NCBI GenBank assembly: GCA_002269645.1
Contig: NIVC01000391.1
Location: forward strand, 62,001 to 126,000
Reading direction: 5' to 3'
Length of the DNA stretch: 64,000 bases
Source of the DNA: Macrostomum lignano
Taxonomy: Eukaryota
The notes under the pieces: model-generated
Seen by the model: the letters and a program-made list of their open reading frames with translations, nothing else
What the model was told of the DNA's origin: nothing
Database searches by the model: none
Position numbers and translations under genes: made by a program
In this document: piece after piece, positions 17,576-64,000 of the stretch
Numbering within the stretch: position 1 is the stretch's first letter
Layout: every line of letters starts with the position of its first letter

Positions 17576-17694
17576 GAATCTCTATTAATCTTGTCTCATC
17601 TCCTATATCCTAAAATCCTCCCCAATCCGACAGTCATCAGCTCGTGTTCATCCGTCCCTCTGCTGTCTGTTTGTCCTTCAGCCATCCCGTCCAG

Positions 17695-19165
17695 ATGGCA
17701 AGCGAAAAAGAGCCGCGAGACGGGCAGCAGTCGCCGCCGCAGCCGCAGGGCACGAATGAACCGATCCAGCCGGCCTTGTTGCCATGCCAACCAGCCGCGG
17801 CTGGGACGCCGCTAGCCGCCGGTCAGCTGGTGCTAGTGCGGCACGGGGAGTCAGTTGCTAACGCCAACAGGGAGCTGAGCGGCTGGCAGGACTCAGCGTT
17901 GACCAGCCAGGGCGAGGCGCAGGCACTCTGCGTTGCTAGGCAACTGCGCGAGGCCAACTGGTCGCCTGAGCTGGCCTTCTGCAGCGTCCTGCAGCGGGCC
18001 AGGAGGACCTGTCAGATCATCTGCTGCCAGCTGAGCCCTGCCGCCACTGCCGGCTTTGAGGGCCGGGAGGTGAGATTGGACTGACTGGGATGGGTGAGAT
18101 TGGACGGACTGGCTGGGATGGGTGAGATTGGACTGGCTGGGATGGGTGAGATTGGACTGGCTGGGATGGGTGAGATTGGACTGGCTGGGATGGGTGAGAT
18201 TAGACTGGCTGGGATGGGTGAGATTGGACTGGCTGGGATGGGTGAGATTGGACTGGCTGGGATGGGTGAGATTGGACTGGCTGGGATGGGTGAGATTGGA
18301 CTGGCTGGGATGGGTGAGATTGGACTGGCTGGGATGGGTGAGATTGGACTGGCAGGGTGAGTGATGAGATTGGCAGGGTGAGTGATGAGAATGGCAGGGT
18401 GAGTGATGAGATTGGCAGGGTGAGTGATGAGAATGGCAGGGTGAGTGATGAGATTGGCAGGGTGAGTGATGAGATTGGCAGGGTGAGTGATGAGATTGGC
18501 AGGGTGAGTGATGAGATTGGCAGGGTGAGTGATGAGATTGGCAGGGTGAGTGATGAGATTGGCAGGGTGAGTGATGAGATTGGCAGAGTGAGTGATGAGA
18601 TTGGCAGGGTGAGTGATGAGATTGGCAGGGTGAGTGATGAGATTGGCAGGGTGAGTGATGAGATTGGCAGGGTGAGTGATGAGAGTGCTGTCATATCATG
18701 CGAATTAATTCGTTAAACCGCGAACCGCCCCGCTGCGCACCGCAGAGCCCAGTGTGCCCAATTCAGACCTCCTGGCAGCTCAACGAGCAGATGTACGGCA
18801 CCCTGGTCGGCCAGGCCAACCGCCGCGGCGTCCTGTCGGCCTGGAACGACCGGCCGCCGCCGCTGGCCCGCAGCGACCCCCTGTGGCCGGGCCACGAGGC
18901 CAAATATGACGGCGTGCCGCGGGACCTGCTGCCCGAGTCCGAGACCTGCCTGGAGGCCTTCGACCGGGTGCGCGGCTACTTTGCCAAGGCCATCGCGCCG
19001 CAGGTGCTGGCCGGCCGCCGGGTGCTTTGGGTCGGCCACGGCGGCGTCTTTCACTCGTTTGTGCTGCGAACTGTCGGCCAGAATGTGCACTTTGTCAACT
19101 GCCAGCCCTACCTGCTGCTGCTCAACCGCCACGGCTGGCCTGTCGGTATTGAGTCCTGCTTCTGA
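17695..19165 (+). CDS. Histidine phosphatase superfamily, cofactor-dependent phosphoglycerate mutase-like protein, 2 exons
   Basis: Exons 17695-18069 and 18746-19165 (phase 0). Motifs LVLVRHGES, SGWQDSALT, CSVLQRARRT, SWQLNEQMYG, VLWVGHGG. Confidence 0.9.
18070..18684. repeat. Two adjacent intronic minisatellites: 24-bp GTGAGATTGGACTGGCTGGGATGG and 21-bp GGTGAGTGATGAGATTGGCAG
   Basis: About 12 and about 15 copies. The first unit begins at the intron donor. Confidence 0.95.
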
Positions 19166-28577: not shown

Positions 28578-29549
28578 ATTTTACCTTCAAGTGTAGTCTT
28601 ATTTTACTGAAGAAACCAGTCAGAACTCGAGCAGCTTTTTCTCATAAATCGGAGCTTTTATAACCGCCTGGAGATGTCCACTTCCTGCACCTGGTCCGCA
28701 ACGGTTTCAGCCGATTTTGAAGCAATTCCGGGATTTCAATTTCCTGTTTCACCCTTGAGGATCTTTCCGGAGGTTGAATGCAGTTTCAATAAGGAAGGCA
28801 GAACAAGTTCTCGGCTTACGGGCTAAGTCCATGAGATTGCATATGTTAAAACTTTGAGAATTTCAGAGCCGAGTTTATTGCAGCAAAAAAGTTCTGTGGA
28901 CTATTTTTGCTAAAGCTGAAGTTAAATTCTCCAACTGGGATTAATGTCAAGGTTGACATTGTATCAGTGGAATGCGTGGCATTGTTTGGAACACCTGCAT
29001 CTGCCATGCGTACAGGTGCAAATTGTTTGCTCATGCATTATGAGAGTTTTGCAAGATGCGGAAATACGACTTCAATTCGTTGGGAAATTTACACAGCGAA
29101 AAATTCTGATCATTGGTAAATTTGCACACACACACAACTTCATTTTGTAAGTGCCCGACTTCATCAATAGCTAACCTGCCCACTGATGCCAGCTGTTTGT
29201 GCGCATAAATTTTGTAAATCGGTTAACATGTTTTGCTGAGATGTCCCTACAAATATAGGTCACTAACAGTAAAGTAGTGAAACAACATGATGGTGTCAAC
29301 GTTTCTTGGAGTACTCTGTGACCGCGGCAGTAAACGATAGGCAATTAGACAGCTAAGTTTTTATTCGCTGACTTCCTCAAAATATGCAGGCCGACCCGTG
29401 CTCTGCAGCGGTATGCTCTCGCAGGCCTGAAATTTGTTTCAGATTTTTCTACTAGCTTATTCATGTCGACTCGCTGAGACTTACAGTGGGGGAATGAGTA
29501 CATTAGGTAGGTCTAAGAATTAATTGAAAACGACACGCTAGGGACTTCT

Positions 29550-30860
29550 GGGAAGGCAGAGACACACTAGGGACTTCTGGGAAGGAAGAGATACACTAGG
29601 GACTTCTGGGAAGGAAGAGATACACTAGGGACTTCTGGGAAAGAAGAGATACACTAAGGACTTCTGGGAAGGAAGAGATACACTAGGGACTTCTGTGAAA
29701 GAAGAGATACACTAGTTGGTTCTGGGAAGGAAGAGACACGCTAGGGACTTCTGGGAAGGAAGAGACACACTAGGGACTTCTGGGAAGGAAGAGACACACT
29801 AGAGACTTCTGGGAAGGAAGAGACACACTAGGGGGTTCTGGGAAGGAAGAGACACACTATAGGGACTTCTGGGAAGGAAGAGACACACTAGGGGGTTCTG
29901 GGAAAGAAGAGACACACTAGGGACTTCTGGGAAGGAAGAGACACACTAGTGGGTTCTGGGAAAGAAGAGACACACTAAGGACTTCTGGGAAGGAAGAGAT
30001 ACACTAGGGACTTCTGGGAAAGAAGAGATACACTAGTTGGTTCTGGGAAGGAAGAGACACGCTAGGGACTTCTGGGAAGGAAGAGACACACTAGGGACTT
30101 CTGGGAGGGAAGAGACACACTAGGGACTTCTAAGAAGGAAGAGACACACTAGGGACTTCTGGGAAGGAAGAGACACACTAGGGACTTCTGGGAAGGAAGA
30201 GACACACTAGGGGAGTTCTGGGAAAGAAGAGACACACTAGGGGGTTCTGGGAAGGAAGAGACACACTAGAGACTTCTGGGAAGGAAGAGACACACTAGGG
30301 GGTTCTGGGAAGGAAGAGACACACTATAGGGACTTCTGGGAAGGAAGAGACACACTAGGGACTTCTGGGAGGGAAGAGACACACTAGGGACTTCTAAGAA
30401 GGAAGAGACACACTAGGGGGTTCTGGGAAAGAAGAGACACACTAGGGACTTCTGGGAAGGAAGAGACACACTAGGGACTTCTGGGAAGGAAGAGACACAC
30501 TAGAGACTTCTGGGAAGGAAGAGACACACTAGGGGGTTCTGGGAAGGAAGAGACACACTAGGGACTTCTGGGAAGGAAGAGACACACTAGGGACTTCTGG
30601 GAAGGAAGAGACACACTAGGGACTTCTGGGAAGGAAGAGACACACTAGAGACTTCTGGGAAGGAAGAGACACACTAGTGGGTTCTGGGAAAGAAGAGACA
30701 CACTAGTGGGTTCTGGGAAAGAAGAGACACACTAGGGAGTTCTGGGAAAGAAGAGACACACTAGTGGGTTCTGGGAAAGAAGAGACACACTAGGGAGTTC
30801 TGGAATTGAGACACGGACGGGGGTTCTGGGAAGGAAGGGACACACAAAGAACTTTGGGAA
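29550..30860. repeat. Minisatellite, 29-bp unit GGGACTTCTGGGAAGGAAGAGACACACTA
   Basis: About 45 copies at the 3' end or in the last intron of the GPCR gene. Confidence 0.95.
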
Positions 30861-30955
30861 GCGAGAGGCACGACTAACTTCTGGGTTTTCTGTGGGTTTC
30901 TTCTGTAAGAAGCTGGGTGGGGGGGTGTTCTGTGAAAGCAAAAATAGCATCTCAC

Positions 30956-33900
30956 TTCCATTGTCTCCCGATCGTCCCGCAGGCGTTGGCTCCCTCCGCG
31001 GGTTCTCCCTGCCGTCAGTCGCTCATTGAGATCCCTCCTGCTCCTACGTGCCAACCTTTGCTGAGACCTGTAGTCTGCTAGCTGAGGTGGACTGGCGCTG
31101 TTGTTGTTGTTGATGCCATTGCTAGCCGTGTTGTCCCTGCTGCCTCTGAAGGCCATTCGCGGCCGGTTTCCAGCATCCAGCCAGACTGCCAATTGCAGCT
31201 TCCTGGCCTGGCGTCGCAACTCGTTCCGGACCTCGGAGTTGATAAAACAGAACAGCAGGGCGGCGAAAAAGCCCTGTGGATTGCCGGATATGAAGATAGC
31301 GTTCCTCCAAGAAAAAGCGTAATTGAGGCTAAACAAGCTCTAGCTATGCATTGCAGGAGCTCCATTTCAGCCTCCTTTTGGACAAGAAACCTAGCTCGTA
31401 CATTTCTACATCTACCAAGACAAGAGACAGAGGCCTACACCAAGAAACGTACAAATTGCTGCGTACGAGTGCTTCATAGGTCTTTAGATCAAATTGTTCC
31501 CAATCAATGTCACCTTTCACTTACCTGGAATGAGTTGAAGAAGTGCTCATAATAGAGGTGCACAATAGTTAGCGTTTTGCCCAGCTTGTCCTTGGGCACC
31601 ATGGTGACGGGTAGAAAGATGAGATAGTAAATGCCGAACACCAGGATGAGGAGGCAGGTAGACTTCCACAGCTTCCTGGGAATGTCGGACAGATTTTGGC
31701 GCCTCGTTGAAGTATCGAAATTCGAAACTTTATACCTTGAGAGATACGCCTCATATTCTCTTCTTGCTACTCTTTAGTGAACAAACTCATATGTAGTTAA
31801 CAACACGTAGGAAGCCAAATGCATTCGGGGCTTCTGGGCGAAAATTGGCTGAGGTCTTGTCGTGCAATTCATGTCCACGAGGGTCAACCCCCAAGGCACA
31901 GAGTGTACATGCCTGATAATTAGGAAGTCAGGGCTGCCGTACACCCTGTGTGAGCGTGCATGAGTGCCTGCCTGCGTACAGTATTGGCGCGCTTGCAGGT
32001 GCTCAGGAGTCAAGGGGGTTGGGAGAATTGCCTCAGCATCTCAGGATCTCAGGACGATGTTGTCGCGAAAAGCGTTGTGCCAGGGTGCCGGCAATTAGTT
32101 ATAGTAACATTATTATTGACGCTTTTTGAACATCATCGGGACTCACAAATAGGGCTGAACTGTCGGTGCATCGGCTGGCGCCTGCCGTCTCAGCTTGATG
32201 AAGAGCTCGCGCACAATCTTCGCGAACAGAATGGCATTCATCTGCGGAGAAGATTTTTTGTTTGGTGTGCACGGATGCAGAGTTAGTGGTCGAATGGTTG
32301 AAGTTTTTGCTGCTTGTGATGATTAATATTTCTGTACTGCGAGTAGCTAGATGGTTCAACTACTTATTATGTCCCTGTGAACGTCTCCCATACATGTTAC
32401 ATAGACAAAAGTATGATTTTCAAAGTAGTCGTACAAGGATAAGTCTGAACTCATTAATGAATCATTCTGAAAAAAGTGACACCCACGCAGTGACAGTGGC
32501 GAAATGCAATTTTACTGAAGTCCCCAAAAGGACTCGAGAGTGTGCCGGCCATTGGGCCAGCAGTGCTCACCAGCACTAGCAGCGCCAAGTAGACGTTGAG
32601 CAGCCAGATGTCGGGGCCAAGCGGCTTGAACTCGCGCCAGCAGTTCGTGTTGTCAAACAGCAGCCTGAGCATCACCCAGACCATCGTGACTAGACTGCTC
32701 AGGCCTAAAATGTAAATAAATAGATAAAATTGTCACTTATTTGAGTCCTATCTGATTACTCATTTGAGATCTATCCTGTGACTTATTTGAGTCCTATCTG
32801 ATGACTCATTTGAGGTCTATCCTGTGACTTATTTGAGTCCTATCTGATGACTCATTTGAGATCTATGTTGTAACTCATTTGAGGCCTATCTTGTGACTCA
32901 TGTGAGATCTATCTTGTGATTCATTTGAGATCTATCTTGTGACTCATTTGAGGCCTACCGTGTGACTCATTTGAGATCTATCTTCTGACTTATTTGAGAT
33001 CTATCCTGAGACTCATTTGAGGCATTTCCTGAGACTCATTTGAGATCTATCTTGTGACTCATTTGAGATCTATCTTGTGACTCATTTGAGATCTATCTTG
33101 TGACTCATTTGAGATCTATCTTGTAACTCATTTGAGATCTATCTTGTGATTCATTTGAGATCTATCCTAAGACTCATTTGAGGCATTTCCTGAGACTCAT
33201 TTGAGATCTAGCTTGTGACTCATTTGAGATCTATCTTGTGACTTATTTGAGATCTATCCTGAGACTCATTTGAGGCATTTCCTGAGACTCATTTGAGGCC
33301 TACCGTGTGACTCATTTGAGATCTATCTTGTGACTTATTTGAGATCTATCCTGAGACTCATTTGAGGCATTTCCTGAGACTCATTTGAGATCTAGCTTGT
33401 GACTCATTTGAGATCTATCTTGTGACTTATTTGAGATCTATCTTGTGATTCATTTGAGATCTATCTTGTGACTCATTTGAGATCTATCTTGTAACTCATT
33501 TCAGGCCTATCTTATGATTCATTTGAGATCTATCTTGTGACTCATTTGAGATCTATCTTGTGACTCATTTAAGATCTATCCTGAGACTCATTTGAGATCT
33601 ATCTTGTGATTCATTTGAGATCTATCTTGTGACTCATTTGAGATCTATCTTGTGACTCATTTGAGGCCTACCGTGTGACTCATTTGAGATCTATCTTGTG
33701 ACTCATTTAAGATCTATCTTGTGACTCATTTGTGATCTAGCTTGTGACTCATTTGAGATCTATCTTGTGACTCATTTGTGATCTATTTTGTGAATCATTT
33801 GTAATCTATTTTGTTAATTGTGTGATTAAAATTATGGCTCATTTTGTATCCATATTATGGCGCCTAAGTCCTATGTACTGCGTGCACTTTCAACAATCGC

Positions 33901-34867
33901 AAACTGCGCGAGTCAGGCACCAACCCCAGCCAATTGCAAGGTAGCCGGGCGTTGACACTCGTTCGTTGCCCATGCCGCTGACAAAGATCAGTATGTACAG
34001 GTGCAGGGCCTCGACAAAGACCCAGGTGAAACTGCCAATCACTGTGAAGGTCATTAACGTTTGGTTAAGCCGACACAGAGTTGTCTGAAATTTTTATGGC
34101 GAAAAATGATACCTATATAGCTCTTTACTTGCTACTGACAAACACTAAGCGCTAGTAGTATCAACTTCATTTTTCCAGAAAATCTTTAGAAATCGCTTTA
34201 CGCCTTAAAGACGCTCGGCTTACCTGATCGTTCTCAGACAAGGCCCTGTTAACGAAATGGCTGACTGCCCGCAGCGTGAATGCCGAGTACAAATTGATGT
34301 GGATGAAGTTGCGACGGCAGTAAAGGCGCCTGTAGAAAGGAAAGGAGGTGATGGCACGATAAGCATGTGCAGTTGGGAGCCAGAAAAAGGAATGGAAAGA
34401 GTACATTTTCCACAGTGGAGCATGTACGGGCAGAGATATTTCTACAGTGAAAATTTGGCTAGCTGGTAGGATGCCAGGTAGGACCATAGACAACAGCCCT
34501 TTTTACTTATTCAAGAAGACGCAATTTGTACATTTAAACCTTCAGAATGCCTGACGGTTAGAACAAAATACTCATTTAGCTTATAAATATGCTTTCACCT
34601 CTTAGAGCTACTTGACTAAATCCCCTGGCTTCGAACACGACAGGAAATGAGTTTTCCACCCTTTGAGACGCAAAAATATTTTACCGAAAGCTCGTCAAAA
34701 TAACGATGCCAATCAGCAGAGTGGATAGAGAGAGGCTGTGCCCGACCAGCCCAATCATGCTCATGATGGCCAGGTGTCTCTGCAATTTGTTAGGTTGGAA
34801 AGAAATTAGCATACTCTTATGACGCACATCAACATCGAGTAGCATCAGGACAGACAGACAGACACTA

Positions 34868-34919
<52 letters not shown>

Positions 34920-34947
34920 CGACGGACAGACCGACAGAAAGACAGAA

Positions 34948-35008
<61 letters not shown>

Positions 35009-35131
35009 CTAAGACAGACAGACAGACAGACATTAAGACAGACAGACAGACACCAAGACAGACAGACAGACAGACACTAAGACAGACAGACAGACAGACA
35101 GACAGACTGACAGACACCAAGACAGACACTA

Positions 35132-35195
<64 letters not shown>

Positions 35196-35223
35196 CGACG
35201 GACAGACCGACAGAAAGACAGAA

Positions 35224-35288
<65 letters not shown>

Positions 35289-35291
35289 CTA

Positions 35292-35352
<61 letters not shown>

Positions 35353-35467
35353 CTAAGACAGACAGACAGACAGACATTAAGACAGACAGACAGACACCAA
35401 GACAGACAGACAGACAGACACTAAGACAGACAGACAGACAGACTGACAGACACCAAGACAGACACTA

Positions 35468-35512
<45 letters not shown>

Positions 35513-35633
35513 CCAAGACAGACACTAAGACAGACAGACAGACAGACTGACAGACACCAAGACAGACACTAAGACAGACAGACAGACAGACAGAAGACAC
35601 TAAGACAGACAGACAGACAGACAGAAGACACTA

Positions 35634-35666
<33 letters not shown>

Positions 35667-38600
35667 CCAAGACAGACACTAAGACAGACAGACAGACAGA
35701 CTGCCAGACCTTCGCAACAGCTCTTTCATCGGCAGCGGCAGCATCAAAACTTGATGAAGAGGATTCCATGGCCAGGCAGTCGGAGAAGTTGGTCCAGCCG
35801 CCCAGGTGCCAGGTGCCGTTAGCGTGGCACATCCTGGTGGCGTACCTGTCCCGCTGCACTTCATTCAAGTAGTCCGGGCAGAGCTGGCGCCCGAAAGTGC
35901 CAGCCGGCACCGTCGGCCAGCACAGAACACCGTCAAAGGCTGGACGGCAGCCGGCGGCATCCGACTGACTCTGCGACGCACCGTGCGTTTTTTTTATATG
36001 GGCGCAGAGGTGCCTCTCCAGCCTGAGTCGAAGCTGCTGGGTCTCGTTGCTCACCTGTGTCAGGCGCACCTGTTATTGATGGCGAGGAACCGAAATGAGT
36101 AGAATCATTACATTTATATTTTGTGCAGTCTGAGGCCCGCCTGACCGCAGAGAGCGGCGCTGTTGCAGGCGGTGTTCGAGACGGGAGCACGAGAAATGCC
36201 CGCAGACGAATTGCCCGCCGAGATTTGCCCGCAGGAGATTTGCCCGTGGAGATTTGCCCGCCGAGCTTTTCCCGCGGAGATTTGCCCGCAGTGCATTTTG
36301 CCCGTGAGCGAATTGCCCGTGGAGATTTGCCCGCCGAGAATTGCCCGCCGAGATTTGCCCGCAGTGCAATTTTCCCGCGAGTGAATTGCCCGCGAGCAAA
36401 TTGCCCGCCGAGTTTTTTCCCGCCGAGGTTTGCCCGCAATCCTTTTTTTGCAGCGCATTTGGCCACGCGGCAGATTTTGTCTGCATTGCCTTCCCAATGC
36501 TTAGTACGTGTTAATCTTAATAAAGAGATTTACACGATCAAAACGTTTTGATAGTAACTGCATATCAAATGCATATTTTGGGGGGAGCAATGTATGGACA
36601 GAATCTAGCTGCCAAATGCGCTGCAAAAAAAGGATTGCGGGCAAACCTCGGCGGGAAAAAACTCGGCGGGCAATTCGCTCGCGGCAATTCACTCGCGGGA
36701 AAATTGCACTGCGGGCAAATCTCGGCGGGCAATTCTCGGCGGGCAAATCTCCACGGGCAATTCGCTCACGGGCAAAATGCACTGCGGGCAAATCTCCGCG
36801 GGAAAAGCTCGGCGGGCAAATCTCCACGGGCAAATCTCCTGCGGGCAAATCTCGGCGGGCAATTCGTCTGCGGGCAATTCTCATGGACCCGTTCGAGACA
36901 ATGCCGAGATTGGCTCGAACAGCCAATTGGAATGCCATCGCACACGCATGTGCGATGGCATTCCATATGGCTTTTTCGACGCACCATATGACACATCTAT
37001 GACACACGTATGATACAACTGTGACACATCTATAACACACCTATGATACTCTATGACACACCTATGATACATCTATGACACCTATGACACAACTGTGACA
37101 CATCTACGAGTATAACACACCTATGATACTCTATGACACACCTATGATACATCTATGACACCTATGACACAACTGTGACACAACTGTGACACAACTGTGA
37201 CACACCTGTGACACGCCTATGATACACCTATGATACACCTGTGACACACCTGTGACACACCTGTGACACACCTGTGACACACCTGTGACACACCTGTGAC
37301 ACACCTGTGACACACCTGTGACACACCTGTGACACACCTGTGACACACCTGTGACACACCTGTGACACACCTGTGACACACCTGTGACACACCTGTGACA
37401 CACCTGTGACACACCTGTGACACACCTGTGACACACCTGTGACACACCTGTGACACACCTGTGACACACCTGTGACACACCTGTGACACACCTGTGACAC
37501 ACCTGTGACACGCCTATGATACACTTATGATACACCTATGACACGCCTGAGACACCTGTGAAACACCTAGGGAGGACACCTATGACAAAAAATCCAGAAA
37601 AAATGCCAATAATCTGTAGTAAATTCTCAAGAACTTTTAGCCGCTTACCAACTCGTACAGGCTTCTTGCCAGACTGGCATTGCGCTCTGAGCAGTCGGAG
37701 TAGTCAGTGAGCGGGTGAAACTCGCCACCATCGCTGCCGCTGCTCCGCCATCGACTGTCGGCCTGGCAGCGTCGTTTGGCGAAGCGCACTCGGCCTTCGT
37801 TGCCGAACACCTGGCCGGGACAGGGCAGGGACGCGTCGGAGCTCGCGGGCGCCGATGGCCAGCATAGGAAGCCGTCGAATTGCCCGGAGCAGTTGCTGGC
37901 AGCAGCGGCGGCGCCGGGGGTGGCGAGGCTCGTCAGGCGGCCCAATGCCAGTTGAGACTGGCAGCTCTGCTCGGCCCTGCGGAGCTGCTCAACCAGTTCC
38001 TCCTGGCTCAGGCTGGGCGGGCCGCCCTGCTGCGCCTGCAAGGTTATGTGGGGTCAGCATCTGACAGCTGAAGTCCCGACAGTTGGAGTCCCGAATCTGA
38101 CAGCTGGAGTCCCGAATCTGACAGCTGGAGTCCCGAATCTGACAGCTGAAGTCCCGACAGTTGGAGTCCCGAATCTGACAGCTGGAGTCCCGAATCTGAC
38201 AGCTGGAGTCCCGAATCTGACAGCTGAAGTCCCGAAAGCTGGAGTCCCGAATCTGACAGCTGAAGTCCCGACAGTTGGAGTCCCGAATCTGACAGCTGGA
38301 GTCCCGAATCTGACAGCTGGAGTCCCGAATCTGACAGCTGGAGTCCCGAATCTGACAGCTGGAGTCCCGAATCTGACAGCTGGAGTCCCGAATCTGACAG
38401 CTGGAGTCCCGAATCTGACAGCTGGAGTCCCGAATCTGACAGCTGGAGTCCCGAATCTGACAGCTGAAGTCCCGAAAGCTGGAGTCCCGAATCTGACAGC
38501 TGAAGTCCCGACAGCTGGAGTCCCGAATCTGACAGCTGAAGTCCCGACAGTTGGAGTCCCGAATCTGACAGCTGGAGTCCCGAATCTGACAGCTGGAGTC

Positions 38601-41600
38601 CCGAATCTGATAACTGGAGTCCCGAATCTGACAGCTGGAGTCCCGAATCTGATAACTGGAGTCCCGAATCTGACAGTTGGAGTCCCGACAGTTGGAGTCC
38701 CGAATCTGACAGCTGGAGTCCCGAATCTGACAGCTGGAGTCCCGAATCTGACAGCTGGAGTCCCGAATCTGACAGCTGGAGTCCCGAATCTGACAGCTGG
38801 AGTCCCGAATCTGACAGCTGGAGTCCCGAATCTGACAGCTGGAGTCCCGAATCTGACAGCTGGAGTCCCGAATCTGACAGCTGGAGTCCCGAATCTGACA
38901 GCTGGAGTCCCGAATCTGACAGCTGGAGTCCCGAATCTGACAGCTGGAGTCCCGAATCTGACAGCTGGAGTCCCGACAGCTGGAGTCCCGAATCTGACAG
39001 TTGGAGTCCCGACAGTTGGAGTCCCGAATCTGACAGCTGGAGTCCCGACAGCTGGAGTCCCGAATCTGACAGTTGGAGTCCCGACAGTTGGAGTCCCGAA
39101 TCTGACAGTTGGAGTCCCGACAGTTGGAGTCCCGAATCTGACAGCTGGAGTCCCGAATCTGACAGCTGAAGTCCCGACAGCTGGAGTCCCGAATCTGACA
39201 GCTGGAGTCCCGAATCTGATAACTGGAGTCCCGAATCTGACAGTTGGAGTCCCGACAGTTGGAGTCCCGAATCTGACAGCTGGAGTCCCGAATCTGACAG
39301 CTGGAGTCCCGAATCTGACAGCTGGAGTCCCGAATCTGACAGCTGGAGTCCCGAATCTGACAGCTGGAGTCCCGAATCTGACAGCTGGAGTCCCGAATCT
39401 GACAGCTGGAGTCCCGAATCTGACAGCTGGAGTCCCGAATCTGACAGCTGGAGTCCCGAATCTGACAGCTGGAGTCCCGAATCTGCTCAGACGTCAGCCA
39501 AGTAAGTTCACTCAGTGCGGACATGAATAATTCATTGGGTTCGGTTAAGGGAGCTCGGAGTGCCCGATGGCCTCAAAACGGCCCAGTGCAAATTCTGATT
39601 GAAAGCGGGATCAATAAAACGAAAAACGAACAGAGGAGGATAGTCTTGTACTCTGATGATTTTTCTCGAAGAGCACAGGGAATTGAGCTCTGCTCAGCAT
39701 GAAATCTCAAATTCTATTTTAGCGAAGCAGAGCCCCTCAGCAGTGGCGTGGAACAGGTGATTGTTTGCCGGGATTCGCTGGCTCAGTTCCTTTTATTCCT
39801 TCATGAGCCCTGGTTGAGTGCGAGAGAAGAGCAAAAAAAGCAGACGGCAAAATGGCTCTGCCGAAAAGTCGACTGTTTGCACAGAGGGAATTCTTGATTC
39901 ACCATGAAATTCCCATCGGTTCTGCGCGGGGATATTGCAATATTCTACAATATATTCAACTCAAAAAGGCTGAAGATCAAAAGAGAGACCAGCATCATCT
40001 GCAGTGAAGACAGCGGAGCTTGCAAAATCAGATTGCTAATGCTACTCTCGTACTTGGTTGCAGAATCCAAAGTACACCCCGTCATCTTAAAATTATTCTC
40101 ATTGAGCTTTGCGTTCAGATTCGAACTTGTGAAGATTCGATATTGTGAAGACTAGATATTGTGAAGATTCGATATTGTGAATATTCGATATTGTGAAGAG
40201 TCGATATTGTGAATATTCGATATTGTGAATATTCGATATTGTCAAGATTCGATATTGTGAAGATTCGATATTGTGAAGACTAGATATTGTGAAGATTCGA
40301 TATTGTGAAGATTCGATATTGTGAATATTCGATATTGTGAAGACTCGATATTGTGAATATTCGATATTGTGAATATTCGATATTGTCAAGATTCGATATT
40401 GTGAAGATTCGATATTGTGAAGACTAGATATTGTGAAGATTCGATATTGTGAAGACTAGATATTGTGAAGATTCGATATTGTGAAGATTCGATATTGTGA
40501 AGACTAGATATTGTGAAGATTCGATATTGTGAAGACTAGATATTGTGCAGATTCGATATTGTGAAGGTTCGATATTATGCAGATTCGATATTGTGAAGAC
40601 TAGATAATCAGATTCGATATTGTGAAGGTTTGATATTGTGCAGACTAGATAATCAGATTCGATATTGTGAAGGTTTGATATTGTGAAGATTCGATATTGT
40701 GAAGACTAGATATTGTGAAGATTCGATATTGTGAAGATTCGATATTGTGAAGATTCGATATTGTGAAGACTAGATATTGTGAAGATTCGATATTGGGAAG
40801 ATTCGATATTGTGAAGACTAGATATTGTGAAAATTCAATATTGTGAAGACTAGATATTGTGAAGATTCGATATTGTGAAAATACGAACTAGTGAAGATTC
40901 GATATTGTGAAGACTAGATAATCAGATTCGATATTGTGAAGACTAGATATTGTGAAGATTCGATATTGTGAAGACTAGATATTGTGAAGATTCGATATTG
41001 TGAAGACTAGATATTGTGCAGATTCGATATTGTGAAGACTAGATAATCAGATTCGATATTGTGAAGGTTTGATATTGTGAAGATTCGATATTGTGAAGGT
41101 TTGATATTGTGAAGATTCGATATTGTGAAGACTAGATATTGTGAAGATTCGATATTGTGAAGATTCGATATTGTGAAGATTCGATATTGTGAAGACTAGA
41201 TATTGTGAAGATTCGATATTGTGAATACTAGATATTGTGCAGATTCGATATTGTGAAGATTCGATATTGTGAAGACTAGATATTGTGCAGATTCGATATT
41301 GTGAAGACTAGATATTGTGCAGATTCGATATTGTGAAGATTCGATATTGTGAAGATTCGATATTGTGAAGATTCGATATTGTGAAGACTAGATATTGTGC
41401 AGATTCGATATTGTGAAGATTCGATATTGTGAAGATTCGATTTTGTGAAGACTAGATATTGTGCAGATTCGATATTGTGAAGGTTCGATATTGTGAAGGT
41501 TCGATATTATGCAGATTCGATATTGTGAAGATTCGATATTGTGAAGACTAGATATTGTGAATATTCGATATTGTGAAGACTAGATATTGTGAATATTCGA

Positions 41601-44355
41601 TATTGTAAATATTCTATATTGTTCGATATTATTATGAATTTACAGACTGGAATCGACCCATGCGGGGCTCTTAGTAATGTTCTATAATTCACTAATACGT
41701 GATTCACTGTTAAAACTGAATCCTGAAAATTCTTTGAGCTGTAGTCCGACTGAGTCTGTATGAGTAAAGATATATTCGAGTTATTTATGAAACTTTTTGC
41801 TGGCTTAGAGCAAGGATTTTTGGCACACTGATGCTGATAAATCTTATTTATCAAATGCTTTCGGGAATGACACTGAAAGTCGATGCACTGCATACAAATG
41901 AGGACCTTTCGTAAGTCTCGAATTACGCATGCCTAAATTTGGGAAATTTCCGAAATAATAATCTCCGAAAGCTCCCAACGATTGTGAAGCTTTAGGATCG
42001 TGAAATTTGTAGATTGTAAAGTTTGGGGATCGTGAAGTTTGAGGTCATGAAGCTTGTAGTTTGTGAAGTTTGGGGACCGTGGAGTTTTTTTGGCGATCCT
42101 GAAGTTTGGAGATTTTGAAGTTTAAGGATCGTGAAGTTTCGGATTGTGAAGTTTGGGGATCGTGAAGTTTGGGGATCGTGAAGTTTGGAGATTGTGAAGT
42201 TTGGGGTCGTGAAGTTTGGGGTCGTGAAGTTTGGAGATTGTGAAGTTTGTAGATTGTGAAGTTTGGGGACCGTGAAGTTTGGGGATCGTGAAGTTTGGGG
42301 ATCGTGAAGTTTGGGGATCGTGAAGTTTGGAGATTGTGAAGTTTGGGGATCGTGAAGTTTGGGGTCGTGAAGTTCGTGAAGTTGGGGGTCGTGAAGTTTG
42401 AGGATTGTGAATTTTGTAGATTGTGAAGTTTGGGGATCGTGAAGTTTGGGGACCGTGAAGTTTGGGGATCGTGAAGTTTGGGGATTGTGAAGTTTGGGGA
42501 TCGTGGAGTTTGGGGATCGTGGAGTTTGGGGATCGTGGAGTTTGGGGATCGTGAAGTTTGGGGATCGTGAAGTTTGGAGATTGTGAAGTTTGGGGATCGT
42601 GAAGTTTGGGGTCGTGAAGTTCGTGAAGTTGGGGGTCGTGAAGTTTGGGGATCGTGAAGTTTGGGGATCGTGAAGTTTGGGGATCGTGAAGTTTGGAGAT
42701 TGTGAAGTTTGGGGATCGTGAAGTTTGGGGATCGTGAAGTTTGGGGATCGTGAAACGTGGGGGATTGTGAATATGAAATTTCTGGGATTTCAAAGTGGGG
42801 GAGCTGAGATAAATATCCTGTCTTTATGGCAAGCCGGCCCCAGAGAAGAACGTTGCATTCGAAATTGACTCAAATTGGCGCATTTGCAGCCTCTAGTTTC
42901 CACATCACATGTATCGCCGGCAGGTTGCACGCCAAATTCTAACTGATGAAACCAAGAGAGAAACATGCAGGTGACTCTCAACAAGCCTGGATGCTGGGGG
43001 CTCAGCTGCAGCCAGGTTTTCCGATGGCCTTCTTGTTAAAACAGGCAGCTGCGAAAGCGGCTCTTTGTCGCAAAGGGTTTGGGCGGCAGTAAAAATTGCA
43101 GAGATGCGCAATTATTTTTTATCTGAAAACTAATTGCACCGACTTTGCAGCTGCCTGATCTCGAAAATCTGGAGAGCAGAGAGAAGTGTTTATTATTGGT
43201 TGCTTTAGCGGGCGCATTGCGGATCAGTCTCACAGCTTTGCTAATTTTGGCGCCGGTTTCTTGATTTTGGCGCCTGCTTCTTGATTTTGGCGCCTGCTAT
43301 TTTAGTTTTGGCAACTTACGGGACTTTTGTGACCCTGTAGTTACAGTTTCGATGACTGCTATTTTTAATTTTTAGACTTTCGATCAAATATTGCCTTGAA
43401 GTGGACACATTTGCCTTGAAGTGGACACATTTGCCTTGAAGTGGACACATTTGCCTTGAAGTGAACACCCCAGTCTCGAAGTGGACACCCCAGTCTCGGA
43501 GTGCGGACACTCCTGCAGTCTCGAAGTGGACACCCCAGTCCCGTAGTGGACACCTTTGCCTCGAAGAGGACACGTCAGTCTCGAATTGGACACCCCAGTC
43601 TGAAGGTGGACACCCCAGTCTCGAAGTGAACACCCCAGTCTCGAAGTAAACACCCCAGTCTCGAAGTGGACAGCCCAGTCTAAAAGTTGACACCCCAGTC
43701 TCGAAGTGGACACCTTTGCCTCGAAGTGGACACCCCAGTCTCGTAGTGGCCACCTTTGCCTCGAAGTAGACACCCCAGTCTCGTAGTGGACACCTTTGCC
43801 TCGAAGTGGACACCCCAGTCTCGTAGTGGACACCTGTGCCTCGAAGTGGACACCCCAATCCCGTAGTGGACACCCCAATCCCGTAGTGGACACCTTTGCC
43901 TCGAAGTGGACACCCCAGTCTCGTAGTGGACACCTTTGCCTCGAAGTGGACACCCCAGTCTCGTAGTGGACACCTGTGCCTCGAAGTGGACACCCAAATC
44001 CCGTAGTGGACACCTTTGCCTCGAAGTGGACACGCCAGTCTCGAAATTTGACACCCCAGTCTGAAGGTGGACACCCCAGTCTCGAAGCGAACACCCCAGT
44101 CTCGAAGTGAACACCCCAGTCTCGAAGTGGACACCTTTGCCTCGAAGTGGACACCCCAGTCTCGAATTGGACACCCCAGTCTAAAAGTGGACACAAAATT
44201 CACAACTCAAGAATACTCGCATGTAAAGTTCAATTAGCAACAAAAAGCTCGCAATCTACCATTGTTGTTGTGCTGGTGAAAGCGCAGATTAGCATCAGAA
44301 CTTCAGTCCGCGAGCTTGTTCGCCGAAAAGCAGATGACGTCATGCTGGCGCTCAT
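30956..44355 (-). CDS. Class B1 (secretin-like) G protein-coupled receptor with two tandem hormone-binding (HRM) domains
   Basis: Exons 44355-44260, 38035-37649 (HRM1), 36069-35710 (HRM2), 34779-34685, 34329-34224, 34084-33925, 32704-32571, 32241-32147, 31675-31525 and 31273-30956 join in frame. 7tm_2 motifs: [56 protein letters not shown]. The C-terminus is uncertain (possible final exon from 29512, or read-through to 30761). Confidence 0.9.
32733..33800. repeat. Intronic minisatellite, 23-bp unit TGACTCATTTGAGATCTATCTTG
   Basis: About 45 copies between the TM3 and TM4 exons. Confidence 0.95.
34845..35700. repeat. (GACA)n microsatellite with CACTAA/CACCAA interruptions
   Basis: Fills the intron between the HRM2 and TM1 exons. 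Confidence 0.97.
36183..36890. mobile_element. Foldback MITE, 708 bp, about 280-bp TIRs built of subrepeats, 9-bp TSD (Mutator-like)
   Basis: GGG...CCC termini; arms of TTGCCCGC-type subrepeats in inverted orientation. TSD GTTCGAGAC at 36174-36182 and 36891-36899. Confidence 0.93.
36985..37590. repeat. Intronic minisatellite, 11-bp unit TGTGACACACC
   Basis: Homogeneous core with degenerate flanks, between the HRM1 and HRM2 exons. Confidence 0.95.
38059..39487. repeat. Intronic minisatellite, 21-bp unit GCTGGAGTCCCGAATCTGACA
   Basis: About 70 copies with 15-bp deletion variants; source of the VPNLTAG and QIRDSSC ORFs. Confidence 0.97.
40125..41625. repeat. Intronic minisatellite, 16-bp unit GATATTGTGAAGATTC
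   Basis: About 90 copies. Confidence 0.97.
41985..42775. repeat. Intronic minisatellite, 16-bp unit GTGAAGTTTGGGGATC
   Basis: About 48 copies. Confidence 0.95.
43392..44195. repeat. Intronic minisatellite, 20-bp unit GAAGTGGACACCCCAGTCTC
   Basis: About 40 copies, alternating with GGACACCTTTGCCTC variants. Confidence 0.95.
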
Positions 44356-44581
44356 AAATAGCTTGGTGCAAAATCTGTCAGAGCCGAAGAAACAGCGTTT
44401 ATCAAAGCCTTGCCGTCCCGGGCAGCCTGTCCAGCTGTTTTGTCCTCAAAGATTTGCTCTTCCGCCCAGACGCAACTGGCTGGTTAGCAGAGCCAATCCT
44501 AGGACGGCGTCATGGCCACACCATGGACTGCCGGCGGCACGGAACACCTGCGTAGACATTTGACACCCCAAACCCCAAACT

Positions 44582-45460
<879 letters not shown>

Positions 45461-46955: not shown

Positions 46956-46967
46956 TATATCAAGGAA

Positions 46968-50228: not shown

Positions 50229-50489
50229 CATACATGCGCAACCCCCCTGATTTATACTGGCCATGCGACTTACTTTTTGACCAAAAATGCAACTTACCTG
50301 TGAAAAAACAAGCAAAATTAACATAAACGGCAGGAGTAACTATGACTGTCTTATCAGGTCTAAATTCCTTGGCATCTAATTAGCACTATGTCCATATTCT
50401 TTGGGGTGGCATTTTTGCGACTTACCCCTGGTCCACCACAATTTACGGTGGCCAAATCGGCCAGGTTGGCCAGCAGTTGCGTATGTATG
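50229..50489. mobile_element. 261-bp MITE (14-bp TIRs, 8-bp TSD; hAT- or P-like) carrying a 28S rDNA fragment
   Basis: TIR CATACATGCGCAAC / GTTGCGTATGTATG (13/14 match). TSD ATTTAAGC at 50221-50228 and 50490-50497. Confidence 0.85.
50324..50383 (+). pseudogene. Degenerate 28S rRNA fragment (helix 69-71 region)
   Basis: TAAACGGCAGGAGTAACTATGACTGTCTTATCAGGTCTAAATTCCTTGGCATCTAATTAG versus the recalled eukaryotic LSU consensus TAAACGGCGGGAGTAACTATGACTCTCTTAAGGTAGCCAAATGCCTCGTCATCTAATTAG: about 48/60 identical, ungapped. Confidence 0.85.
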
Positions 50490-51642
50490 ATTTAAGCACT
50501 AATTCTTAGATAGATATACACTCATATTTGATACTTATAATATTTGTTGTCAGTTTTTTATCTTATTCTAAATCTAAACTCATAAATAATGCTAAAGTAA
50601 ACTTTATTTATTATTTTGTAATAAACAATAATGACTTTTATATCTTTATAGTTAAGAGAATGCAGACAAACTGGCAGCAAATGAAATAATTATTGAAAAC
50701 ATAGTTATAAGCTAGGTTATTATTAACTATATAATTAATACTAAGTTACTATGTTATATTGTTATTAGATATGACTTATACTCATAGCCATTGGATAAAA
50801 AAGTTGCTCCAAAACTAATGGATATTTATATTTATAATTATAAAAAATATTTTTTCTTTGAAAAGCTATCTCTAATTCTAGTTGATATTAAACATTTAAT
50901 ATAAATAGATATAAAAGGCATAAAAACCTAGTTTAGACAATCTATAAAATATTTCTTAAAAATTTCTTTTTTATTATCCTAATATATCATTATCCATAAA
51001 TGATGAGACAAGACTAATTATAGAATATATTTGCTTTTTATTTTTAGGAATCGGCTTATTGCTATATTAACTATGTAAAAATTTTTAAACCCAATGTTAT
51101 ATGTTATAATGTTATAATAATTTTTTTTTATTGATGGTATATGCATGTCTACATATATAAGTTATGCTATATATATAACTTAGAATTAAACTAAATTGGC
51201 AAAGGTAATTAAAAAGGTAATTAACACCTTCAAACCCACTGGCTACTCTGCAGCCATCCACTAATGCCCGCAGCCATAGCTATCTACAGCCAAAACAAAT
51301 GGCACCTTGCCACTTATGAGAAACCCACTGTGGCTGCAGAGCAGCCATCAAAGAAACCGCACCTTTTTATATGAATAAGCTCATTAGTAAATCTATGGCT
51401 GCTTATAGGGAGACAGATGTTTATAGCTACTCTGCAGTCAGCAGGTTTTCTCAGAGTGAGTGCAGAAGCTTAAAAGGCAGAAGTGGTAACATTAATAGTA
51501 AGTTACAGAGTCTGTGAGTAAATAGTCGTTGAAACAATAGTTGATAAATAATTATCCCATTTGTTACAAACATATTCGGCCTGGGTAGTGAAACCATGTA
51601 TATAATATTAATTAATGCTATCCCTGCCAGCAGCCCAGTAAA

Positions 51643-53388
51643 ATGGTCACCAACCAGCAGCAGCAACAGCAACAGCTCTCAGCCTCCATAGCCGTCAGCT
51701 CAGCTGGCACTGTGCTGGCCACATCCGCCGCGCCTCAGGTAGCCCAGATCATCCAGCTGCCCATGGGTGCCACCAGCGTGGCCTCAGCGCAGCAGCCGCA
51801 GCAACAGGCGGTTTTCTATGCAGCCCCGGCTGCGCCGGCCCCGGCTGCCCAGCAGGTGCTCGCCATCCAGACTGCCGACGGTCAGATTGTGCACCTGCCA
51901 GTGCAGTGCGCCGCCGGGCCCAACGGCCAGATGGTGCTGATGCTGCCGCAGACGGCCGCCGCTGCCACGGCCGGCCAGCAGCTGACTTTGCCGACTGTCG
52001 GCGCCGCGGCTCCCGCGCCGGTCATCACCTCGGCGACAACAGCATCAGCCGCCGTCAGCGAGGCGCCGCAGATGAAGCCGATGGTGGTGACCGGCCAAGC
52101 GGAAGCCGCCGCCGAACCCGCCGACGAAGCCGGGCTCGGCATGGTCGACGGCGACGCCTCTGCGGCCGACGCAGACAGCGGCGTCGCTGTCGGATCCGGT
52201 GGCGCCGGAGGGGAGGAGGAGCCGCTGTACGTCAACGCCAAGCAGTACCACAGGATCCTCAAGCGGCGGGCGGCCAGGTGAGCTGACTGGATGTGTCAGA
52301 ATCTGGGTGCTATTTATGATTCCAATTGGGTCTGAATTCTGCATGGCAAGTGACGAGAGTTATGATGCACACTATGCCACAAAAATAAGCTTAGCAACAA
52401 GGACTATCTGAAAAACTGCTAGAATAATATCTGTTAAGTCTGTCAGATTCCTTTCCTGTTTGTTATGAAAATTTCATTTTATAATGTGGGATTTATTTGT
52501 AACTGTCAGCGTCTTTTGCACCTGTCTTTTTGGGATGTTTCAGATTCTTTTTTCGGCGTGTTAGAGCCAGTTTAGGTGCTGGGTGCTTTAATCCTGTCAG
52601 TGTCGAAGGCTTGTCAAAGGCTGTCAAAATGTGTCAGGGGCTGTCAGAGACTGTCAAAGTGTGTCAAAGGCTGTAGGAGTGTGTCAGAGGCTTTAGGAGT
52701 GTGTCAGATGCTTTAGGAGTGTGTCAGAGGCTTTAGGAGTGTGTCAGAGCCTCTCAGAGGCTCTAGGAGTGTGTCGGAGCTGTCAGAGGCTGTAGGAGTG
52801 TGTCGGAGCCTGTCAGAGGCTCTAGGAGTGTGTCAGAGGCTGTAGGAGTGTGTCAGAGGCTGCAGGAGTGTGTCAGCCTGTAGGAGTGTGTCAGAGGCAG
52901 TAGGAGTGTGTCGGAGCCTGTCAGAGGCTGTAGGAGTGTGTCAGACTGTGTCAGGCTGTTTCAGAGGCTAACTGTGTAGTCAGTGTCACTTAGCAGCAGA
53001 GCCTTCATTCCCTCGTTCCCCATCACTGCAATTGGCCGCAACGCGCAGGGCGAAGCTGGAGGCTGAAGGCCGCATACCCAAGGAACGGCAGAAGTACCTG
53101 CACGAGTCCAGGCACAAGCACGCCATGAACCGGCAGCGCGGCGCCGGAGGCAGATTCTTCTCTCCCCAGGAGCTGCAGCAGCAACAGCAGCAGCAGCAAC
53201 AGCAGCAGCAGGCAGCCAGGCAGCAGGCCAACCGCTCAGCCGCCAGTCGAACTACGGGCGCTGCCCAGCCGAATCGGCCAGTGGCGATGGCCGCCGCGCC
53301 TCTTAAAGTTGAAGGCGTCGTGGTTCTCTCCGCTCCGCCAGCCTCGGCCTCGAATCAGCAGCAGCAGCTGCCTTCGGCCACATCGTAA
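51643..53388 (+). CDS. NFYA: Nuclear transcription factor Y subunit alpha (CCAAT-binding factor B), 2 exons identified
   Basis: Exons 51643-52277 and 53049-53388. Gln/Ala-rich activation region, then [57 protein letters not shown]. An upstream exon is possible (in-frame acceptor at 51630). Confidence 0.95.
52620..52965. repeat. Intronic minisatellite, about 20-bp unit GGAGTGTGTCAGAGGCTGTA
   Basis: Degenerate tandem copies in the NFYA intron. Confidence 0.85.
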
Positions 53389-55041: not shown

Positions 55042-56306
55042 TCATTCCTCTCTTCGGTAGTCGCCAGACTTTCCCCCAGTCTTGGCCAGCAGGCGCAGGT
55101 CGCGCACCACAATGCTTTTGTCCGCCGCTTTGCACATATCGTAGACGGTGAGGGCGGCCACGGCGCAGCCAGTCAGGGCCTCCATCTCCACGCCGGTTCG
55201 ACCGTCGCACTCGACCCGACAGGTGACGTCCACGCGGGGCTCGGCGTTGTGCACGGTGACGCTGGTCTGTCAGGGTTGGCGGGGGAATGTCTCGCACCTG
55301 CTTACATGTGTACTGCCCGCGGCTTTGATTATGCACGTATAATATGAACGTAGAATTTCTTTTTTTAGTTTGTTTAAATTCCGCAATTTTAACAGCCTAA
55401 TGGCATGCATGTTACCAAGAGGTCAAGTATGGCGTGAAATTAGTGTAGGAGCGTGTTGGAGACCAGCAGTGTGTCAGAAACTGCAATGAGTGTCACAGGC
55501 TGAGTGTGTCAGTGCCTGTCTCACGGCCGTCTGGGTGGGTCAGAGGCTGTACATGTACATGTAGTAGTGTCAGAATTTGTAGGTTTGTGTCAGCCAGCCC
55601 ATAAGGCTGTTCGAGCCGCTTGAAAGAGTGTCAGAGGCCAGGACTGTGTCAGAGAATTTTAGCATGTGTACATCAAAGCCTGCAGAAGTGTTGTTACTCG
55701 TATACTCTTATACGAGATACTCGTATTGCCAGCTTGAGTGAGGTAGAATATGCCAGGGCCCGGATAGCGCAGCTCAGAGATGGTCCAGCCTTGTGACTAC
55801 TCTTAACATAAGCGACTGTATGATGTCAGCTTAGCTGCTGAGCCACCCGCCAACCATCTCAGATCCTCGGTGCTCAGAGAAGCACTGACATTCATTGTCT
55901 TTCTTTGCAATTTTAAGCGCTTCCTCAGCAGCTGCATGCGCACGCAGGTGGCACCAACCTGAGCGCTATTGAGCGGCAGCTGGTGGCACAGCGGGATGAG
56001 CTCAGAGGTCCTCTTGGCGGCCATCACGCCTGCCAGCTCGGCTGTGAGCAGCACTGAACCCTTGGCCAGCTGGCCGCCAGAGTCCAGCAGCAGTCGGTGC
56101 AGCCCAGCCGACACGGTCAGGTGGCAGGCAGCTTCGGCGACACGGCGACTCGATGACTTGTCGCCGACGTTCACCATGCGGGGCCTGGCGGTGGCGGCGT
56201 CAATGTGGCTGAGCGAGTCGCTGCCGCCGACGCCGCCCGACTGGCAGCTGCGAGCCGCAGATGCGGTCAGCAGCAGGCGCCGGGCTTGCGCAAAGCGTCC
56301 GAGCAT
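55042..56306 (-). CDS. moaC: Cyclic pyranopterin monophosphate synthase MoaC (MOCS1B-like), with a putative mitochondrial transit peptide, 2 exons
   Basis: Exons 56306-55959 and 55266-55042. Motifs LSHID...[58 protein letters not shown]. Confidence 0.92.
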
Positions 56307-56449
56307 TCTGCGATCGTTTAAAGCAGAGCAGCTGAGCAAAAGCAGCAGCAGTTCTGCTGCTGCAATGGCACACCGGGGCTGGTCTAGAGACGAGTGGGGA
56401 AGCCAGGGATTCCTATAGACATTCCTTGCCTAGAGGTGATTTAGGAAAG

Positions 56450-57529: not shown

Positions 57530-57722
57530 TCACTTGCACGCTCTCTGATTGGCCAGTCACTTGTACGCTCTATTCTGATTGGCCAGTCACTTGTACGCTC
57601 TCTGATTGGCCAGTCACTTGTACGCTCTATTCTGATTGGCCAGTCACTTGTACGCTCTCTGATTGGCCAGTCACTTGTACGCTCTCTGATTGGCCAGTCA
57701 CTTGTACGCTCTCTGATTGGCC
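57530..57722. repeat. 27-bp tandem repeat (7 copies) overlapping the RBM39 stop codon; each unit contains a CCAAT box
   Basis: Unit TCTGATTGGCCAGTCACTTGTACGCTC. Confidence 0.93.
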
Positions 57723-63104: not shown

Positions 63105-64000
63105 CTAGACGGGGAAGGGAAAGAAACAAAAGTGGGGAAACAGAGACTGAGAGAGGTCGCGATTGATGATAACTGGTGAATGGCTGGACAGTCGGGCGAG
63201 TGAAAACACCCGACAATACAATGCAAAAGCCTATGTCCGGGGTCTTCGCTCATTTGTTACCGTGGCAACTGATCCCTTCTTAATCAAAGCTGCGTCCGCA
63301 GCGGCAGAGGCAGAGAGACATACAGAGCGCCTCCTGCAAGGTTGCGAATTTGTCAAGTCAATAACTTTCAGCACAAGTTTTTTTGTCTTATTAGGCAAAC
63401 AATTTTAAGACGATGATGATGAAGCAAAGCAACCGCGAGGCTGGAGAGCGCGAGACCACACAGCGTTATCCAACTCACTGCCCAATCTCGAAGCCCTAGA
63501 AAGAGGATATTTACAAACTTGGCAACAGCGTAACCAACCAATTCAATTCTCTGGTCTGAATTCAATACCTTAGAAAAGGCAATTAGTTACTTGAGAATGC
63601 TGAGTAACTACTCGACTCATCGCCCCGGTAAGATCTGAAAAGCCAATTAAGCAATTAATCTGTACAGTACAGACGAGGAATAAAAACTGGGGTGCAAGAA
63701 TTGACGAGCTGCCGGAGTAGGAGCCAGCGTAAAATCATCTCGAGCCTTCACACCTGTCAATCAACTGGCGTCAGGCCTGCGGGGTTGTTGATTTTGATTG
63801 CAGTGGTTTGTTGGCATGGTAGCAGCTGCTCAGCTCCCTGCTCGGTGTCAGTTAATGGCCTAATTCTGCCGATCAAAATCAACCGACTGCCAGTTTTGAT
63901 CGGCAATAAAGAACGGCCTATTTTTAATTCTCAACTCGCTACTTGAGAGTAGGATGTCGAGAGGATTTGTCACTAGCCTTTTCATAAGCTTGCTTGTCAA

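Follow-up and report, generated by a model that had tools for sequence, protein, structure and literature searches.

The minus strand of a 64,000-nucleotide stretch of DNA (positions 62,001 to 126,000 of contig NIVC01000391.1, analyzed at its full length and referred to as the window) carries a gene for a class B, or secretin-family, G protein-coupled receptor with two complete hormone-binding (HRM) domains, HRM1 and HRM2, in front of one seven-transmembrane (7TM) region. This is probably a single class B1 gene resembling the parathyroid hormone (PTH) receptor genes, in which an old tandem duplication of the ligand-binding exon gave rise to the layout HRM1-HRM2-7TM. On the evidence of their alignments, HRM1 and HRM2 are both conserved, domain for domain, with those of the Macrostomum lignano protein A0A1I8IK20. 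The two-headed receptor is real, but its layout is already present in this public M. lignano entry, and it does not constitute a new receptor class.

A first-pass annotation of this DNA had proposed that two exons each encode a complete six-cysteine HRM domain and that both exons are of phase 0-0, and both proposals held. The translations of the HRM1 and HRM2 exons (Table 1) are free of stop codons and matched the Pfam HRM profile (PF02793), that of HRM1 with 47.6 bits (E = 2.2e-12) and that of HRM2 with 60.8 bits (E = 1.7e-16), the gathering cut-off of the profile being 26.2 bits. Both domains follow the class B ectodomain pattern C...C..FDG..CWP...CP...RxC...W...SDC, with the structural core, comprising the six cysteines, the aspartate of FDG, CWP, RxC, and the distal tryptophan, kept in each. 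The exon lengths are divisible by three, and the boundaries are AG/GT sites. Each acceptor consists of a pyrimidine-rich stretch followed by AG, and an in-frame stop lies just upstream, namely a TGA six codons before the HRM1 acceptor (...ccttgcag/GCG) and a TAA one codon before the HRM2 acceptor (...aataacag/GTG), so that the start and the phase 0 of each exon are nearly forced. The HRM1 donor (TTG/gtaagc) is strong.

All nine exons of the gene model, the two HRM exons and the seven exons of the 7TM region at 34779-30761, have AG/GT sites and join in frame. Pfam analysis of the spliced model revealed a single full 7tm_2 domain (PF00002; E = 1.7e-52, spanning positions 4-249 of the 250 in the profile) in addition to the two HRM stretches, which bears out the earlier assignment of the locus to one gene for a class B receptor. 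HRM2 lies ∼24 residues from the first transmembrane helix (TM1). Inspection of the joined model reveals further marks of class B1, including RRLYCxRNxIHxNL after TM1, the cysteines of extracellular loops (ECL) 1 and 2, GWG in TM4, and NSFQGFF before TM7. Adhesion (B2) receptors are separated from class B1 by a GAIN/GPS autoproteolysis domain. HRM and 7tm_2 were the only Pfam domains on the model at E values up to 0.01, and thus no GAIN/GPS domain is present.

The whole window was searched by tblastn at E values up to 10 with the joined model and ten other class B receptors as queries. No 7TM similarity was observed outside the seven exons. HRM similarity was confined to the two HRM exons, with no third HRM in the window, and neither a 7TM remnant nor any other coding remnant was detected in the 1579-nt intron that separates these exons; no 7TM remnant was detected further upstream. 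That a single 7TM region lies downstream of the HRM exons and that no transmembrane remnants separate them, as had been noted from the sequence, is in agreement with these results.

The best public match to the window receptor was A0A1I8IK20, an uncharacterized “G_PROTEIN_RECEP_F2_4 domain-containing protein.” Pfam analysis of both proteins gave the same HRM-HRM-7tm_2 layout, and the two are collinear from HRM1 through the linker and HRM2 to the 7TM region (E = 1e-113, 92-97% of the query). With an identity of 38% (BLASTP) or 47% (MAFFT), about 40%, A0A1I8IK20 derives from another gene or species. The exon junction YEL/VRL of the window receptor aligns without a gap to KRL-QVT of A0A1I8IK20. 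HRM1 of A0A1I8IK20 scored 62 bits against the window HRM1 exon (42% identity) and 44 bits against the HRM2 exon, and its HRM2 scored 84 bits against the HRM2 exon (41% identity) and 47 bits against the HRM1 exon. Identity was similar in the 7TM region (44%). In a neighbor-joining (NJ) tree of the domains, the window HRM2 grouped with the M. lignano HRM2 with 77% bootstrap support. Given this one-to-one match, and given that HRM1 and HRM2 of the window gene are only 36% identical in amino acid sequence, the HRM duplication is older than the split of the window gene and A0A1I8IK20. That HRM1 is conserved to about the same degree as HRM2 and the 7TM region speaks against its being a dead exon and favors the view that both domains are in regular use. 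No protein more than 50% identical to the window N terminus was found among 1.84 billion representatives, and a profile search built from the window receptor and A0A1I8IK20 returned the same five proteins again, with no closer relatives. An exact look-up of A0A1I8IK20 gave no match.

When HRM2 and the 7TM region were compared with solved structures, PTH1R was the best match (210 bits), followed by VIPR1 and GIPR at ∼180 bits; no calcitonin receptor (CTR or CLR) was present among the 60 best PDB matches. Among the fetched proteins, the nearest 7TM regions after that of A0A1I8IK20 were those of PTH/PTHrP-receptor-like or “secretin receptor-like” proteins (33-37% identity, 153-165 bits), which come from lamprey, snails, bivalves, a nemertean, and ticks. 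Overall, 7TM scores against the window receptor were 155-208 bits for A0A1I8IK20 and the PTHR-like receptors and 71-96 bits for the calcitonin and PDF types with multiple HRMs. In the NJ tree of 7TM regions, the window receptor and A0A1I8IK20 paired with 100% bootstrap support, and the calcitonin/PDF-type clade stood apart at 99%. The window receptor appears to belong with the PTH-receptor-like branch, its position inside rather than beside that branch being modestly supported (55-65% bootstrap). Membership among the calcitonin-type two-HRM receptors was considered and rejected on account of these low scores and of the separate clade formed by their 7TM regions (99-100% bootstrap).

An exhaustive search with the two-HRM N terminus yielded 273 proteins at E values up to 0.001. 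At least two HRMs were recognized by a local HMM in about 15 of the best 150 representatives, comprising calcitonin-type, PDF-type, and fish receptors. The Pfam layout HRM-HRM-7tm_2 was found in CLR-like receptors of Ischnura, Hetaerina, Cloeon, Centruroides, Nymphon, and Penaeus and in a PDF receptor of Condylostylus, and four HRMs were found in the CLR-like receptor XP_008287491 of the damselfish Stegastes partitus. Two Logan contigs are also relevant. Contig L002, which is uninterrupted and transcript-like, encodes HRM-HRM-7tm_2 of the arthropod calcitonin type. Contig L001 (ERR14904642, 1-2171) encodes a signal peptide, three HRMs (split by what seems to be a single frameshift), and the beginning of TM1, and looks like the message of a three-HRM class B receptor. 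Because both are uninterrupted, transcript-like contigs, messages with multiple HRMs exist.

The rarity ascribed to the two-HRM layout in the first-pass annotation could therefore not be upheld, given that A0A1I8IK20 already has it and that about one in ten of the best representatives carries at least two HRMs. The opposite notion, that the architecture is already common, applies in part. HRM-HRM-7tm_2 proteins occur in several arthropods, namely damselflies, a mayfly, a scorpion, a sea spider, a shrimp, and a fly. The nearest PTHR-like relatives after A0A1I8IK20 have a single HRM. In the literature, the secretin-type receptors listed for Schistosoma and Schmidtea are all single-HRM (Zamanian et al. 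2011; PMC3261222), the number of HRMs is unmentioned in Cardoso et al. 2014 and Veenstra 2014, and no description of a two-HRM PTHR-like or flatworm receptor was found. A different arrangement, HRM-7TM-HRM-7TM, was observed in two predicted proteins, XP_046553576 of Haliotis rubra and XP_076330114 of Tachypleus. In each case, the annotation pipeline has probably joined two class B genes that lie in tandem, and such fused models mean that some “two-HRM” database entries are artifacts that cannot be counted as tandem ectodomains.

The origin of the two-headed receptor can be explained by the following minimal model. The ancestral ectodomain would have been encoded by a single phase 0-0 exon, and tandem duplication of such an exon, which stays in frame, would have produced the two-headed receptor directly. 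The symmetry of the HRM exons is accordingly better read as a precondition for in-frame duplication than as pointing to alternatively spliced forms. Since receptors with multiple HRMs fall in other subfamilies and the nearest 7TM regions belong to single-HRM receptors, an independent doubling in the lineage of the window gene and A0A1I8IK20 is the simplest account. Class B1 receptors bind peptides by a two-step mechanism. By analogy, HRM2 is probably the canonical binder and would hold the C-terminal part of the peptide ligand, the N terminus of which would enter the 7TM core; HRM2 is favored for this role because of its better profile match and its normal stalk length to TM1. HRM1, carried on a predicted helical linker to HRM2, is most likely an accessory module rather than a relic and may serve extra ligand capture, binding of a second partner, or self-inhibition. 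The main transcript probably contains both HRM exons.

It is unlikely that the symmetric HRM exons are instead alternatively spliced to give HRM1-only or HRM2-only receptors besides, or in place of, the two-domain form. Both are multiples of three with phase-0 flanks, such that skipping of either keeps the frame, and they are homologous and, at 387 and 360 nt, of similar size, which is characteristic of duplicated exons that are used alternatively. However, although adjacency, homology, like length, and identical phase, all expected of mutually exclusive exons, are present, a barrier to joint inclusion is not. The frame is preserved when both exons are included, and the intron of 1579 nt has GT-AG ends, so that exclusive use would be imposed neither by nonsense-mediated decay nor by steric hindrance. 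The only related protein model, A0A1I8IK20, has both HRMs, and the equal conservation of HRM1 and HRM2 fits constitutive inclusion. A scan of the intron between the HRM exons revealed no ATG-initiated hydrophobic open reading frame (ORF) and no alternative start or signal-peptide exon. Separate use of the two exons might also be achieved by trans-splicing, given that the M. lignano spliced leader ends in ...TTGCATG and that 30% of the genes of this species are trans-spliced (PMC8629364). Addition of the leader to either phase-0 acceptor would give an in-frame ATG start, and no convincing conventional first exon was found in scans of positions 36070-54500. By contrast, a start created in this manner would yield a receptor lacking a signal peptide, and the M. 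lignano spliced-leader sequence was not found in the window. The broader proposal that the HRM exons act as interchangeable or combinable cassettes, through skipping or spliced-leader trans-splicing, and so provide several ligand specificities from one gene is quite unlikely.

Two further explanations concern the source of HRM1. According to one, HRM1 is the leftover first coding exon of a deleted upstream tandem paralogue or belongs to a separate transcript. Tandem class B paralogues do occur elsewhere and are sometimes fused by predictors, as in the HRM-7TM-HRM-7TM model of Haliotis rubra, and no upstream start exon that would tie HRM1 to the receptor gene was found. In opposition to this, tblastn revealed no 7TM fragment between or upstream of the HRM exons, and the HRM1 exon has neither a Met nor a signal peptide but does have a strong donor and a strand and phase that fit the HRM2 acceptor. 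Moreover, the unit HRM1-linker-HRM2 is kept in M. lignano, where the identity is 42% and every structural residue is intact, which would not be the case for a dead exon. A separate origin of this kind is thus extremely improbable, and the candidate of HRM1 as a relic of a second gene was rejected given the lack of 7TM fragments and the conservation of HRM1. According to the other explanation, which is very unlikely, the two-HRM state was inherited from the same event as that of the arthropod calcitonin-type two-HRM receptors. The distal HRMs of the window receptor, the M. lignano protein, and the arthropod receptors do fall together in the HRM domain tree, but this grouping has only 19-22% bootstrap support and joins the longest branches. 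The 7TM tree, by contrast, splits the calcitonin/PDF clade from the window clade at 99%, and on the window side of this split every sampled receptor except the M. lignano protein has a single HRM, such that shared ancestry needs repeated HRM losses. A phylogeny of both domains, which the first-pass annotation had called for and which was run as an NJ tree, was therefore informative for HRM2, placed with its M. lignano counterpart, but not for the origin of HRM1.

An ancient tandem duplication within one PTH-receptor-like gene remains the preferred explanation, and the following observations weigh against it. The HRM2 donor (AAG/gtctgg) is weak and lies at the edge of a (GTCT)n microsatellite, which offers further phase-0 GT sites a few codons on. 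The A0A1I8IK20 model is imperfect, having a partial N terminus without a Met, lacking TM1 and TM4/5, and carrying, between TM6 and TM7, an extra 33 residues that resemble a retained intron. This public model needs re-annotation and, as a predicted sequence, may be taken as supporting evidence for, but not as proof of, a two-HRM message; co-inclusion of both HRM exons is deduced from conservation and from this imperfect protein. The HRM domain tree is short and weak, with the low bootstrap values given above for the origin of HRM1, and the placement of the window receptor and A0A1I8IK20 beside PTHR-like and glucagon-like receptors in the 7TM tree has only 55-65% support. AlphaFold2 prediction from a six-sequence alignment gave a mean predicted local distance difference test score of 50.3 and a predicted template modeling score of 0.26, which is too poor to confirm the folds; a helix-then-strands pattern recurs in both HRM regions of this model, the quality of which does not permit fold comparison. 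Finally, three scans of the minus strand at 36070-54500 revealed no convincing first coding or signal-peptide exon.

The upstream signal-peptide-like exon of the first-pass annotation was consequently not recovered, the scans having produced only two weak candidates (Table 1). Both HRM exons lack a usable Met at the start as well as a signal peptide. A gene for NF-YA (CBFB_NFYA), the product of which is glutamine-rich in its N-terminal part, is arranged head-to-head with the receptor gene and restricts how far upstream the 5′ end of the latter can be located. At the opposite end of the gene, the ORF of the last exon runs into a 29-mer tandem array, and tail residues 605-666 match the repeat at 29532-30876 many times. 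The C terminus and 3′ end of the receptor are uncertain for this reason.

The intron between the HRM exons consists almost entirely of repeats. It contains an 11-mer tandem array (36989-37568) and a near-perfect foldback with arms of ∼283 nt that are 98-99% complementary, flank a 147-nt loop, and are composed of 29/73-nt GC-rich subrepeats. The foldback is probably a recent foldback or an insertion resembling a miniature inverted-repeat transposable element. Once transcribed, it would fold into a long hairpin separating the HRM exons in the pre-mRNA, and the 283-nt arms could influence the choice of junction. Long tandem arrays fill almost all introns and flanking regions of the receptor gene, with periods of 4, 8, 11, 16, 20, 21, 23, and 29 nt and up to 216 copies; arrays of the (GACA)n type occur twice.

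Table 1. Coordinates of the receptor exons, repeats, and neighboring genes, counted from the first nucleotide of the window
Feature	Position	Strand	Basis or remarks
Weak first-exon candidate	50274..50324	(-)	MLILLVFSQVSCIFGQK, followed by gtaagt
Weak first-exon candidate	44260..44355	(-)	Met, basic stretch, short hydrophobic run, phase-0 GT (followed by gtagat)
HRM1 exon	37649..38035	(-)	Membrane-distal hormone-binding domain; 387 nt, 129 codons, six Cys, phase 0-0
Intron between HRM exons	36070..37648	(-)	1579 nt, GT-AG; almost all repeat
Foldback in inter-HRM intron	36181..36892		Arms 36181-36463 and 36611-36892
HRM2 exon	35710..36069	(-)	Membrane-proximal hormone-binding domain and stalk; 360 nt, 120 codons, six Cys, phase 0-0
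TM1 exon	34685..34779	(-)	tblastn and AG/GT sites
Intracellular loop (ICL) 1/TM2 exon	34224..34329	(-)	tblastn and AG/GT sites
ECL1 Cys, TM3, start of TM4 exon	33925..34084	(-)	tblastn and AG/GT sites
TM4, ECL2 (NTNCW), start of TM5 exon	32571..32704	(-)	tblastn and AG/GT sites
End of TM5 and ICL3 exon	32147..32241	(-)	tblastn and AG/GT sites
TM6 and ECL3 exon (...YEHFFNSFQ)	31525..31675	(-)	tblastn and AG/GT sites
Last mapped exon, TM7 and C-terminal tail	30761..31273	(-)	AG/GT sites; 3′ end approximate (about 30761)
Tandem array	29532..30876		
Tandem array	32730..33814		
Tandem array	34849..35709		
Tandem array	36989..37568		
Tandem array	38078..39485		
Tandem array	40117..41622		
Tandem array	41980..42754		
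Tandem array	43458..44194		
Tandem array	44583..45451		
Histidine-phosphatase (PGAM-like) gene	17614..19162	(+)	
Single-exon ORF, 357 amino acids	27504..28577	(-)	
NF-YA (CBFB_NFYA) gene	51616..53385	(+)	
MoaC-domain exons	55045..56429	(-)	
RBM39-like splicing factor	57701..63256	(-)	

Several other genes are present in the window. The MoaC-domain exons indicate a function in molybdenum cofactor synthesis. The product of the RBM39-like gene has RRMs, the RBM39 linker, and an RS/RD-rich N terminus, and its best retrieved matches were only 37-42% identical, so that coverage of the source organism in protein databases is poor. A histidine-phosphatase gene of the PGAM-like type lies on the plus strand. 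The single-exon ORF of 357 amino acids encodes a clear signal peptide, a cysteine-rich head, ∼25 mucin-like repeats of the TTTEAP type, and a basic Cys/Arg-rich tail; no exact database match for it is on record. Searches of the window for tRNA genes and Rfam families gave no matches.

Class B1 receptors are the textbook case of “one ectodomain, one peptide.” Together with the M. lignano entry, itself unstudied, the window gene makes two examples of ectodomain duplication in a PTHR-like class B1 receptor, and it draws attention, in flatworm biology, to an orphan peptide receptor whose head is unusual. A PTHR-like receptor with two ectodomains adds an independent case of ectodomain multiplication to those of the calcitonin and PDF types, which suggests that such multiplication is easy where a symmetric exon encodes the domain and that the outcome is tolerated or useful. 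In vertebrate class B1 receptors, splice variants at the N terminus, among them the PAC1 short forms and CRF2 alpha, beta, and gamma, set a precedent for a change of ligand selectivity through splicing of the ectodomain, which the isoform proposal of the first-pass annotation resembles. These variants alter parts of one ectodomain or the signal peptide, unlike a choice between two complete HRM exons, of which, to our knowledge, there is no case. Among known receptors, the closest 7TM family is that of PTH1R, PTH2R, and the protostome PTHR-like receptors, which have the class B1 hallmarks in common with the window receptor but carry a single HRM in all sampled members, where the window receptor has two. 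The calcitonin, CLR-like, and PDF-type receptors with multiple HRMs resemble it in having two to four tandem HRMs before one 7tm_2 domain, and in 2007 Nag and colleagues reportedly described a calcitonin receptor of pufferfish that likewise has several hormone-binding domains; these receptors belong, however, to a class B1 subfamily other than that of the window receptor (99% bootstrap).

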